Positions 1,414 to 63,117 of a stretch of DNA of 64,000 nt are shown here, in pieces (within the stretch, counting starts at the first letter, position 1; every line of letters starts with the position of its first letter). The notes under the pieces are model-generated. The model saw only the letters and a list, made by a program, of their open reading frames with translations, made no database searches and had not been told where the DNA came from. Source of the DNA: Paraphysomonas bandaiensis. Lineage: Eukaryota; Protista; Chrysophyceae. The position numbers and the translations under genes were made by a program. The DNA is taken from NCBI GenBank assembly GCA_965644295.1, contig CBFFRP010000200.1:186001-250000 (forward strand), written 5' to 3'.

Positions 1414-1777
1414 TTAGTGAATGTCTGATTATTAGCAATAGGTGTAAGGGTTCGAGCTAATAATTTAGCATTGAAATTAAGAACAGAGAGCGAAAGTGGT
1501 CGCACCTTGGTGCTTGCGATGACGCACAAGCAGCTTTTGTAGCGCCAAATAGTAGGATATATATCAGAGCTAAGCACTGGTTAGTTATTAAATTGTTTTT
1601 CTACACTAGTTCTGACTCTCACACGAATATAGCTAATAATCAGGCATTCACTACACAAGTATTTGGCTACGATTGGGCAGACTATATATGCGGCATATGT
1701 TAGTTTCTTGGAGAAATATCTCCGGTACTTATCCCCCAGAACACCACGAAAAGGTGGGAGTCCGACATTGTTGAGAG
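1414..1777 (-). mobile_element. Ribozyme-headed SINE-like retroposon, copy A (internally rearranged, with inverted 3' segment ~1481-1653)
   Basis: Homologous to 21029-21457 and 62678-63117. Flanked by a 12-bp TSD: tccctcatcata (1402-1413) / tccgtcatcata (1778-1789). Confidence 0.8.
1691..1777 (-). ncRNA. Degenerate HDV-like ribozyme fold at 5' end of retroposon copy A
   Basis: Retains ACC-UUUUCGU-GGU (P3/L3), the GGAGA/UCUCC P4 hairpin and CUAA J4/2. P2 is eroded. Confidence 0.4.
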
Positions 1778-5801: not shown

Positions 5802-6013
5802 CAGTAATGAATGTCTTGTTATAAGCAATATGCGTGTAAGAGTCAGAAATAATGTAGGAAAACAATTTAGTAACTATCTAGTGCTTAACTCTGATATCCT
5901 ACTATTTGGCGCTACGAAAGCTGCTTGTGCGTCACCGAAAGCACCAAGTTGTGACCACTTTTGCTCTATAACTCAAAGCAAACGTAGTGAGCAAGCATAC
6001 TGTTGATATATAC
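5802..6013 (-). mobile_element. SINE-like retroposon copy B (3' half only; copia inserted at its edge)
   Basis: Aligns by eye to 21029-21212 (tgcttaactctgatatcctactatttggcgctacgaaagctgctt...). Confidence 0.85.
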
Positions 6014-21028: not shown

Positions 21029-21457
21029 CAGTTGTGAATATCTTATTATTAGCAATAAGCGTGTAAGAGTCAGAAATAAAGTAGCAAAACAATTTAACTA
21101 ACTAATGCTTAACTCTGATATCCTACTATTTGGCGCTACGAAAGCTGCTTATGCGTCGCCGTAAGCGCCAAGGTGCAACCACTTTCCCTCTATCACTCAG
21201 AATGTTGATATACTTGACATCTGCTGACTTCATCAGGCAGCCCAATACCCCGGATGCCCTTGAAGTGGGCTTATTCCCGGATGCCTGTTTATTCGCCAGG
21301 GCCCAAAGGCGTCTACACAAGTTAGTGTCCCTTGTACCAGACAATATCTTCTGACTATAGACTATATATGCGGCTCACGTTAGTTTCCCAGAAAAATATC
21401 TCCGATACTTAACCCCCAAAACACCACGAAAAGGTGCGAGTCCGACTTCGTTGAGGG
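21029..21457 (-). mobile_element. SINE-like retroposon copy C (full-length), nested in the hAT transposase relic
   Basis: Imperfect TSD cgtgtatgcca / cgtgtacgaca (9/11). Same 5' end CCCTCAAC as copy E (CTCTCAAC in A). Confidence 0.85.
21371..21457 (-). ncRNA. HDV-like ribozyme fold at 5' end of retroposon copy C
   Basis: CGG-A-CUCGC / GUGAG-CCG (P2), ACC-UUUUCGU-GGU (P3/L3), GG, P4 hairpin, CUAA. Confidence 0.55.
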
Positions 21458-44281: not shown

Positions 44282-45899
44282 TAAGTGAATAAAGTAGCTA
44301 GCTTGTGAGTTGATTGTGGTATAAAAATATTTTATTTCGGGATGTGATGTCTTGCAATTTGTACCGAATCGTATTCCATATATTTAGTGGACACTAGCAC
44401 AATCGATACAAAATGAGGTAGAGTACTATGCAGCTATGCAGAATCGATCTATATGATAGTTAAAGTCAGCGTAGAGTGCGACTACATCAGTGCAGTTTAT
44501 TGTTTACCTAACTATTCTTTTGTCTAATGTCTGTCTGACTCTTGATGCTCCCAGAATGAGAAGAATAAAGTAGCATGAAAAGCCGAACGAAGTGATGGAG
44601 ATAAAAAGTGCCCTAGCAGCATGAACAATGAAGTGCTAGGATTAATAAATATAATTCTTTCGTGAAAGTACGTTGTGTGCAACAAAGCAAATTGAAGATT
44701 CACGGTAGAGAAAGGTTAATTCAGTGTTTTCTAATACTAGCATGCAAATTTTGGGTGGATTCCGCAAATAAAGTTCTACTTACCATCTAATACTAAAGTT
44801 CGATAACAATAACAAATCCTTCAGTGTAACATCGTTTTGTAAATGACCTTTCTAAAGAGGGCAATATGCAGCATGTCCATAAGGTTACCTAACCTCTTAG
44901 ACCTTCCACCTCTTAGCAATAGACATTCCAATGATAAGAAATGTTGCACAATGTCCGTTCAGGACCTTCTCGAGTTGTACCGTATGTCACTAATAAACAC
45001 AATGTCATCCGTCTAACGCTGATTTCGTGGCTTTCATCTACAGAATAACTTTAATTAGGGTTTCATCTAGGGAATCTTCAAAAATATCCCTTTATAGAGG
45101 AGATTGACCCCTCAATATCAACGGACTCACACCTTTCAGTGGTTTTCTAAGGGATGAGTACCTGAGAGGCTCATTTTATAGACAAAAGAAAATTATTCAT
45201 CCTAATAAACAAGAATGTGTGTTTATACGGTAAACAACTCTGGGCTCTTATGCTGATATGTATAGGTGTGTATGTATACATCTACAGGCTATAGACAATT
45301 AGCCCTTATGGAATGAGTTGATTACAGCATACCAGCATACTTCTTCCTCACTACCTCTACTATGATAGTATCATATGTTCTTCTGAGCTTATGACGTAAC
45401 AGTTGAGCTGTCTTCAGCGCTGACAGGTGTATGTATGTATATGCTATGAGCTTATTATCATACTCTACGCACATACACAGTACCTATAGAGGGTGAAGAT
45501 ATACATGAGGATCGTAGACTATGCATGGATACGCTCCTGTATAGGAAAATACACGGAAATACCGTTCACAGAAGTCCACTTGGAATTCCTACATCCATCT
45601 AGAATTTTTTTCATGTGTCATATTACACACACTCCATACTGGTACTGTAGCTCTATATCACACACTCTGTATGTATGCAGTAGCAGAGTACAGCAGTACA
45701 CTGCTCCGTACACTGTCATAGTAGGTACACTATACAAACTCCACACAATCAGCACGTACAGTACATTCCACTGCAGTCACTGTAAGGAGTTACTGCACTG
45801 TAGCATATAAAACACAGTGTTTATTAGTTTGAACATATCGATCAGAGTTACTCTCTTACGTATAGTACAATATAGTTAATAGCACACTGGATTAGTGAC

Positions 45900-51840: not shown

Positions 51841-52016
51841 TAAGCAGGTATATCAACATTCTGCGTTTGCTTGAAGTGATAAAGAAAAAGTGCTTGCACG
51901 TTGGCGCTTGCAGTGACGCACAAGCAGCTTTCGAAGCGTTAAAGAGTAGGATCTCAGAGTTAAGCACTGACTCCTTAATGCCTATTGCTAATAACAAGGC
52001 ATTCCCTTATTTACTG
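51841..52016 (+). mobile_element. SINE-like retroposon copy D (5'-truncated)
   Basis: Reverse-complement match to the 3' half of copies B, C and E (gacgcacaagcagctttcg..tcagagttaagcac..ttgctaataacaaggcattc). Confidence 0.8.
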
Positions 52017-62677: not shown

Positions 62678-63117
62678 CAGTAGTGAATATCTAAGTATTA
62701 GCAATCGTGCATAACTCTGATGACCTTCTATTTTTAACTCTACGAAATCTGCTTGTGCGTCACCGCAAGCAATAAGGTGCAAGCACTTTTGCTTTATCAC
62801 TCAAAGCAAATGCAGTAAGAAGCAGAGTGTTGATATACCCGACATCTGCTTACTTCAGGATTTTGAGTCGTTTAGGTGAACAGTCCGGATCCCATTACCC
62901 GGATGCCCTTGAGGTGAGCCCATTCCAGGGTGCCTGAGTATTCGTCAAGACCCAAAGACGTCCACACAAAAGTCACTTATTTAGCATTTGGCTTTGTGTG
63001 GGCAGATAGTTATCTGCTGGCTATATATGCGGCTCGCGTTAGTTTCCCGGAGAGAATCTCTCCGGTACTTATCACCCAGAACACCACGAAAGGGTGCGAG
63101 TCCGACTTTGTTGAGGG
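62678..63117 (-). mobile_element. SINE-like retroposon copy E (full-length, best-preserved head)
   Basis: Homologous end-to-end to 21029-21457. Possible 10-bp TSD tttaaacttt / attaaatttt. Confidence 0.85.
63030..63117 (-). ncRNA. HDV-like ribozyme fold at 5' end of retroposon copy E
   Basis: CCCUCAAC-AAAGU-CGG-A-CUCGC-ACC-CUUUCGU-GGU-GUUCUGG-GU..CCGGAGAG/CUCUCCGG..CUAA-C-GCGAG-CCG. Confidence 0.6.

Follow-up and report, generated by a model that had tools for sequence, protein, structure and literature searches.

An HDV-like ribozyme module as the probable self-excising 5' head of a recently active SINE family in a marine protist

Three SINE copies in the window

The window, by which we mean the whole 64-kb stretch of DNA analysed, carries three copies of a short interspersed element (SINE), all on the minus strand. 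Their heads lie at 63030-63117, 21371-21457 and 1691-1777 and begin at the same base, and their upstream flanks are mutually unrelated. The copy at 62681-63117 (minus strand, about 437 nt, delimited by alignment to other copies and to the tail of the LINE described below) consists of the ribozyme-like head (element nt 1-88, 63030-63117), a SINE-specific body and a LINE-derived tail ending in ..ATTCACTA. Compared with the consensus of the young copies, its head carries two changes, U26C within L3 and G44U on the 3' side of P1, and it scores 40.2 bits (E 4.5e-9) against R1, a covariance model built from 50 environmental (metagenomic) HDV-like ribozymes, none of which comes from the genome of the SINE. 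The second copy (21033-21457, minus strand) scores 38.5 bits over its head, in which A46U removes the partner base of P1.1. The third (1415-1777, minus strand) is rearranged and flanked by a 12-bp target-site duplication (TSD) with one mismatch; its head scores 31.1 bits, with the P2 3' strand destroyed. Besides these three heads, R1 found no other match in the window at E<=10. All three copies are members of a SINE family of about 440-510 nt, and they are old, decayed insertions that need not be active themselves, the active masters being located elsewhere.

A recently active family with an exact 5' end

The common start nucleotide that the first-pass annotation had noticed in the three window copies is a property of the family throughout the genome. 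The first 36 nt of the element gave 1,025 matches in the 62.5-Mb assembly (at most three mismatches), compared with none for the reversed control, and at least 1,000 genome copies begin at the same base. At every locus read, the unrelated flank stops directly before CCCTCAAC, and in the young copies L019, L021 and L030 TSDs of 10-13 bp adjoin C1 on one side and the 3' end of the element on the other. The insertion of L021 is polymorphic and its limits are exact, since public runs also contain the empty-site allele, whose junction leaves out 1,219 nt and shares 11 nt.

Several non-coding families carry the same head, namely the family of about 440-510 nt, derivatives of about 310 nt and a family of 1,207 nt. 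The latter comprises about 160 copies, of which the full-length ones are about 97.7-100% identical; the tails are 100% identical in 40 of the 40 scored, and one insertion is polymorphic. The SINE family is recently active. Both head and tail were kept in the deletion derivatives of 310, about 500 and 1,207 nt. None of the SINE families has a poly(A) tail, and their 3' terminal motif resembles TAATAATCAGAYWTTCAMT. Downstream of the heads there are open frames, the longest of about 140 codons, and they are not common to different copies.

Every position of the ribozyme class core defined below (U...CG of L3, P3, P1.1, AGUAC, GAAA-CUAA, P2 and P4) is kept in all young subfamilies, and the only differences between the heads of the two subfamilies are in the P4 loop and one G-U/G-C pair. 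An apparent 4-fold difference in conservation between head and body was discarded as confounded, half of the loci having been chosen by head similarity; in copies selected by their tails, head and body have equal rates of non-diagnostic mismatches. The genomic copies show no signal of selection because they decay neutrally after insertion.

A partner LINE that lacks the head

The 3' end of the SINE comes from a 9.4-kb LINE (G000:C25, about 47.9-57.3 kb, minus strand) with three long ORFs, the second encoding a SET domain and an AP-type endonuclease and the third a reverse transcriptase (RT). Over nt 320-509, the short SINE copy L020 has 90.6% identity with the final 190 nt of this LINE, and the terminal motif is common to both elements; some SINE families share only the last 25 nt or so. 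Candidate copies of the LINE number about 147, and identity is 99-100% among the 40 that were scored. A LINE-derived 3' end and TSDs of 10-13 bp are the marks of a non-autonomous retroposon (SINE/SIDE) that depends on a LINE.

An autonomous LINE with the same head had been anticipated, and the partner found here does not answer to it. The LINE starts with ..TAATTCTCTGCCCTACGATGG in the four copies read (the candidates begin within a few bases of one another), and neither a ribozyme head nor an R1 match occurs at its 5' end. One RT locus near a head, at C25, had looked like a head-bearing LINE and proved to be a LINE of its own next to nested SINEs. The SINE is therefore not an internal deletion of the LINE but a composite, since it joins a 5' module of its own to a LINE-derived 3' module. 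Within the reach of our sequence searches, the ribozyme head is shared neither with the LINE partner nor with the rest of the genome.

The head matches a class of HDV-like ribozymes

The class was delimited by a search pattern drawn from the core shared by the trypanosomatid ribozymes and the SINE. The pattern constrains nothing beyond P3, some of L3, AGUAC and GAAR-CUAA. Scanning public metagenomes with this pattern gave 104 loci, and 87 distinct sequences were analysed; the locus L079, from a human-skin metagenome contig, was left out of every analysis. The helices that the pattern does not impose are recovered in these sequences. P1 is paired at 7 of 7 positions in 40 of the 87 (4.7% of shuffled flanks), 73 of the 87 have a P2 of 5 or more contiguous bp (7% of shuffles), and the third base of L3 pairs with the base following the P1 3' strand, forming P1.1, in 85 of the 87. 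In the alignment A3, 92.8% of the cells are paired and 526 are changed on both sides, figures that are somewhat inflated for P2, P3 and P4, because A3 was fitted to R1 in these helices, and free of this bias for P1 and P1.1. None of 500 shuffles reaches the observed level, and slid controls pair at about 40%. Covariation across the class is strong in P2, P4 and P1.1, the last being represented by the column pair 23-44, outside the model (UA 60, CG 25, GC 4, GU 3, other 2). Four members (L138, L156, L103 and L165) lie directly upstream of endonuclease-RT LINE ORFs, and other members directly follow the 3' ends of tRNA genes in AT-rich contigs from metagenomes.

Although built without the candidate, R1 recognises the consensus head of the young copies with 43.6 bits (E 5e-10), at the low end of the range of the class and training sequences (40-73 bits). 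Together with the covariation of P2, P4 and P1.1 across the class, this match to a profile of sequence and structure places the head in the class of HDV-like ribozymes known from the 5' ends of non-LTR retrotransposons, in agreement with the first-pass annotation. In the whole genome, the best 150 R1 matches (E 6e-9 to 9e-4) all measure about 80 nt like the SINE head, and many of them, judged by length and place, coincide with heads from the 36-nt search. Three pattern searches and the best 150 R1 matches retrieved only SINE-head-like sequences and no other ribozyme of the class in this genome.

In contrast, RF00094, RF00622, RF01787, RF01788 and RF02682, which we take to be the HDV-type Rfam families (HDV, CPEB3 and others), gave no match, either at gathering threshold or at E<=10, in the window or in stretches of 700 and 131 nt. 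These models also miss canonical members of the class next to LINE ORFs, and their silence on the SINE head is therefore weak evidence.

Revised anatomy of the head

All parts of the nested double pseudoknot are present in the SINE head in the order P1-P2-P3-L3-P3'-P1'-P1.1-P4-J4/2-P2', as had been proposed for most of them (P2 with a bulged A, P3, the 7-nt L3, P4, CUAA and P2'), and R1 recognises this arrangement. In the window copy at 63030-63117, read on the minus strand, the P2 5' strand (nt 14-22, bulged A17, 63096-63104) would pair with the P2 3' strand (nt 81-88, 63030-63037), as indicated by the sequence, R1 and the covariation of the class. P3 and the enclosed L3 (nt 23-35, 63083-63095) match the class core and the L1Tco ribozyme. 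In the consensus they read ACC/UUUUCGU/GGU, and the class is characterised by a P3 of 3 bp and an L3 of 7-8 nt that opens with U and has CG close to its 3' end. The UU in place of CC in this loop was formerly seen as a weakness. It loses its weight with the occurrence of the same UUUUCGU loop in five other members (L082, L139, L159, L161 and L167). Likewise, the C in place of G at the first position is no anomaly, as C or another base is common there among class members.

The P4 hairpin (nt 53-71, 63047-63065) begins with the C of AGUAC and covaries in the class. It is followed by J4/2, GAAACUAAC (nt 72-80, 63038-63046), which corresponds to the GAAR-CUAA class core and carries the putative catalytic C76 at 63042. 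This base stands at the first J4/2 position, in GAAA-CUAA-C, where the class requires C followed by UAA or GAA. The catalytic C is also the first position of J4/2 in theta ribozymes (PMC10879173).

Two elements of the earlier fold need to be redrawn. P1 had been described as a helix with two central mismatches, and energy and folding models indicate that it is better read as C1-A6 paired with U40-G45. This register consists of six contiguous pairs, one of them U-G, with a dG of -8.7 kcal/mol, compared with -5.7 for the mismatched register and -5.9 for a helix of 8 bp with a 2-nt bulge; the 7-bp P1 helices of other class members range from -4.3 to -8.9 kcal/mol. The plain MFE and centroid folds of the head pick the same 1-6/40-45 register. 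On the window copy, the two strands would be CCCUCA at 63112-63117 and UGGGUG (consensus UGGGGG) at 63073-63078, the former supported by the MFE and centroid folds and the latter by duplex energy and fold. P1.1, previously assigned to the GG, corresponds by homology to the single pair U28-A46 (63090 and 63072), A46 being the base before the AU-AGUAC stretch that pairs with L3 position 3, as in the column pair 23-44 of the class. Consequently, the P1 3' strand ends at G45. The base paired with G45, just before the P1.1 nucleotide, is C1, that is, the first base of the element as defined by the TSDs. The predicted cleavage site therefore lies 5' of base 63117 on the minus strand, and the proposed coincidence of the element boundary with an HDV-type cleavage position holds for this fold, in which the predicted +1 is C1.

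The revised P1 leaves a linker of 3-4 nt, G36-C39 (GUUC, 63079-63082), between P3 and the P1 3' strand, where R1 places a 3-nt insertion. In the class, P1 has 6-7 bp counted from +1, with its 3' strand directly after P3, and such a linker occurs in none of the 87 members. The spacing from GGU to AGUAC is 13 nt in the SINE head versus 9-11 nt in 87 of 87 members, a comparison bounded by the search pattern, which permitted at most 12 nt so that longer members were not retrievable. A genomic copy in which the linker stretch is deleted has the top R1 score, 49.6 bits. The linker, or alternatively a bulged or mismatched P1, could impair catalysis, and either is without tested precedent. By nested MFE, the head does not differ from shuffled sequences (z = 0).

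Transcription and gene context

The element is present in assembled contigs of poly(A) metatranscriptomes, and some of these contigs continue upstream of C1. The evidence consists of assembled Logan contigs, which show presence in RNA libraries rather than RNA 5' ends. Contigs extending upstream of C1 are what co-transcripts would yield, and DNA contamination would look the same. Because these contigs bridge the predicted cleavage site, either uncleaved transcripts or contaminating DNA must exist. In a single, anecdotal case, a bridging contig represents a copy with a mutated core (C30A in L3 and a changed AGUAC).

The first-pass annotation placed the copies downstream of genes. This is true of the three window copies, where same-strand ORFs end about 0.5-1.1 kb upstream. 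It does not extend to a wider, small sample, in which the upstream ORF is on the same strand in 5 cases, on the opposite strand in 4 and absent in 25, with no bias apparent in these numbers.

The head contains a T4 run at nt 26-29, and several further T4 runs occur in the 1.2-kb body. Judged from the sequence, transcription by Pol III appears unlikely, since these runs would terminate it. No promoter motif was identified in the head.

A self-excising SINE and the alternatives

We propose that the first 88 nt of the SINE constitute an HDV-like (delta-like) self-cleaving ribozyme that excises the SINE RNA from longer transcripts, the RNA then being retrotransposed by a LINE; on the sequence evidence, we give this reading a probability of roughly 0.65. 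When part of a longer transcript, probably made by Pol II, a copy would fold into the nested double pseudoknot (P1 1-6/40-45, P2 14-22/81-88, P3 23-25/33-35, P1.1 28/46 and P4 53-71), and C76 in the CUAA junction would catalyse the cutting of the bond 5' of C1. The released RNA would begin exactly at C1 with a 5'-OH, as predicted by the chemistry of this ribozyme class. Its 3' end would be the last 190 nt or so of the 9.4-kb LINE, or about 25 nt in some families, and the LINE machinery would copy it into new sites by target-primed reverse transcription, producing the duplications of 10-13 bp. Self-excision is suggested by the coincidence of the predicted +1 with the start defined by the TSDs, by the retention of the head in the derivatives and by the T4 runs, which disfavour Pol III.

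The most serious competitor, which we consider unlikely, is a head of HDV origin that is now catalytically weak or dead and would act instead at the DNA level, as an internal Pol II promoter or initiator at C1, or might serve as a structured 5' RNA handle. Pr77 of L1Tc offers a precedent, since it is a promoter as well as a ribozyme (PMC3383444, PMC4748587). The unusual region of the P1 3' strand, with 3 nt more than any of the 87 class members has there, and the RNA-library contigs crossing the predicted cleavage site point in the same direction. In addition, the 1.4 kb upstream of many copies is free of ORFs, so that such copies have no obvious gene to supply read-through. Nevertheless, a weak or dead head is at odds with the retention of all class-core positions in all young subfamilies and with a 6-bp P1 as stable as that of other members. 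A promoter at C1 would have to start at exactly the base predicted by the fold, it has no identified motif in its favour, and a promoter role would moreover be compatible with cleavage.

Two further explanations can be weighed against the same evidence. An ordinary SINE head derived from a Pol III small RNA (tRNA, 5S, 7SL, snRNA or other) with an internal promoter would conform to the usual origin of SINEs and to the absence of the head from the partner LINE. However, searches at E<=10 returned no Rfam family apart from noise, no A or B box was seen by eye, the T4 runs of the head and of the 1.2-kb body would stop Pol III, and the ribozyme model matches at E 5e-10, which makes this origin very improbable. 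Even more remote is a chance resemblance to HDV-like ribozymes in a repeat whose 5' end was fixed for unrelated reasons. Short helices are easily found by eye and the nested fold shows no excess of stability over shuffled sequences, yet the R1 match has an E of about 1e-10 in 83 kb and about 1e-8 in the whole genome, and the reversed-pattern controls gave zero.

Within the self-excision reading, the SINE could represent a distinct kind of element, in which a captured HDV-like ribozyme replaces the Pol III head, its source lineage being no longer detectable in the genome, and which parasitises both Pol II read-through and an unrelated, ribozyme-less LINE. We regard this extension as an even bet.

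Comparison with known ribozyme-bearing retroposons

HDV-like ribozymes at the 5' ends of retrotransposons are well documented in insects and trypanosomatids as well as in several other animals, and short retroposon derivatives bearing a ribozyme are already known. Among the trypanosomatid elements, compared by eye over short motifs with the sequences printed in PMC4035085 and PMC3185411, L1Tco and TvSIDER1 self-cleave in vitro (PMC4035085), as does L1Tc (PMC3185411). The L1Tco ribozyme presents, in order, ACC, U-N3-CGU, GGU, a 7-nt P1 3' strand, three bases, AGUAC, P4, GAAG-CUAA and the P2 3' strand (PMC4035085). It matches the full core of the SINE head, ACC-UNNNCGU-GGU...AGUAC...GAAGCUAA, with a single-pair P1.1 in both. 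With the revised P1, the spacing is also identical, with 6 nt from P1.1 to P4 and 4 nt (GAAA) from P4 to the catalytic C. L1Tc matches in its known 3' part, from GGU onward, and TvSIDER1 differs from the core only by GCC/GGC in P3.

The likeness extends to the organisation of the elements. The Pr77 hallmark is common to L1Tc, NARTc, ingi/RIME and SIDER elements (PMC3185411, PMC4035085). As in the L1TcRz/Pr77 system, the ribozyme occupies the first 77-95 nt or so of long and short retroposons, is cut 5' of a +1 C and also occurs on non-autonomous short elements. In contrast to that system, the LINE partner of the SINE lacks the head and the short element is not a deletion of the LINE. The SINE further differs from the trypanosomatid ribozymes by its J4/2, GAAACUAAC rather than GAAGCUAAG, and by three additional bases in the region of the P1 3' strand. 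It also lacks the poly(A) tail of the trypanosomatid elements, and its host genes are found on both strands, unlike those of the trypanosomatid polycistrons.

In the R2/R1 hybrid SIDEs of Drosophila, the R2 ribozyme is joined to the 3' end of the R1 LINE and the R1 machinery is used (PMC3414825). Likened by architecture, these elements follow the same chimeric logic as the SINE, a ribozyme combined with the tail of another LINE, and their 5' HDV-like ribozyme sets the 5' end by cutting a co-transcript. These Drosophila elements are rare and confined to rDNA insertion sites, whereas the SINE is dispersed, currently active and present in at least 1,000 copies. The closest precedents are the R2/R1 hybrid SIDEs and NARTc/SIDER.

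The R1 matches located 3' of tRNAs share their context with the phage theta-type tRNA-associated ribozymes (PMC10879173). These are minimal, lack P4 and belong to the context of tRNA 3' processing, in contrast to the retroposon 5' end of the SINE. As the core also occurs 3' of tRNAs, it has to be regarded as a general HDV-like consensus. With HDV, CPEB3 and the other HDV-type families of Rfam, the SINE head shares the nested double pseudoknot, the catalytic-C position that opens J4/2 and the CG near the 3' end of L3, even though none of their models matches it at E<=10.

The SINE is thus a known device in a different host, a clean and testable example that introduces no new principle and does not overturn current understanding. 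If the head is an active ribozyme of this anatomy, the HDV-like fold would tolerate an insertion of 3-4 nt at the P3/P1 junction, and this natural P1 variant could inform how much slack the double pseudoknot allows. The analysis also supplies a covariance model ready for use, along with about 100 environmental sequences that share a single conserved core, and this core links LINE 5' ends with tRNA-adjacent ribozymes. What is new is a very successful, active and dispersed family whose head is absent from its LINE partner, together with a free-living marine protist as the host of a ribozyme-headed retroposon. This protist is present in many seawater runs.

Variation at the putative ribozyme head

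The 1.2-kb SINE family, whose members start with the same putative HDV-like ribozyme (the head, numbered from C1), contains two head variants in a 9:9 split among 18 full-length copies (loci L031-L060) that are otherwise near-identical. All differences between the variants lie at head nt 60, 64 and 69, corresponding to the P4 loop plus a single pair, or at nt 91-95, directly following P2. This pattern suggests that SINE families have exchanged heads or that templates were switched between them. Partial duplications of the head were also observed, as two loci (L008 and L014) present a partial head, covering its first ~40 nt, directly upstream of the complete one, and a similar 5' partial duplication is found in the metagenomic LINE L138 (L138:150-171). 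These partial heads may have arisen through template jumping as reverse transcription came to its end. Separately, three copies of the 1.2-kb SINE are arranged in tandem in the genome assembly (G000:C421:68.3-74.9 kb; L010-L012 and L031), with spacings of 1,393 and 1,775 nt and with arrays of a roughly 10-20-nt, ACTATAGTAGACTATACTAG-like repeat lying between them.

Only one long RNA-library contig (run X16, compared with L021:1500-2674) bridges the 5' junction of the head. It is a diverged SINE copy with a mutated ribozyme core, in which L3 carries C30A, AGUAC is replaced by AGCGC and the top of P2 is lost. This single case is compatible with the idea that stable uncleaved transcripts come only from dead ribozymes.

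In the window, matches to the tail common to the LINE and the SINE are found without a head at 5887-5960 (minus strand) and 51888-51961 (plus strand). A decayed head-like fragment of 60 nt (45109-45168, plus strand; 78% identical) gives no match to R1, the covariance model built from 50 metagenomic HDV-like ribozymes.

The partner LINE and its flanking repeat

A full-length copy of the 9.4-kb partner LINE lies on the minus strand of contig C25 (G000:C25:45500-59999; L061 and L062), between copies of a 1,566-bp direct repeat. Its ORF2 (L061:2077-4386, minus strand) encodes a SET methyltransferase-like domain and an AP-type endonuclease, the reverse transcriptase being encoded in the ORF that follows. 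The direct repeats are perfect (100% identity) and reflect either a target duplication of unusual length, a segmental duplication of recent date or an effect of the assembly. They are composed of SINE fragments and a ~970-bp element (L061:7241-8311, minus strand) with ~78-bp terminal inverted repeats, which has about 537 candidate copies genome-wide and looks like a MITE or a DNA transposon.

Ribozymes adjacent to tRNA genes

In AT-rich tRNA arrays from metagenomes, HDV-like ribozymes that share the conserved core of the head and have a P4 are found directly 3' of tRNA genes, once in L115 (650-721), once in L164 (77-148) and three times in L143 (532-629, 1334-1414 and 1973-2052). Unlike the phage theta ribozymes, which they resemble, they are not minimal. 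L115 also contains an IS605 OrfB/TnpB-like ORF.
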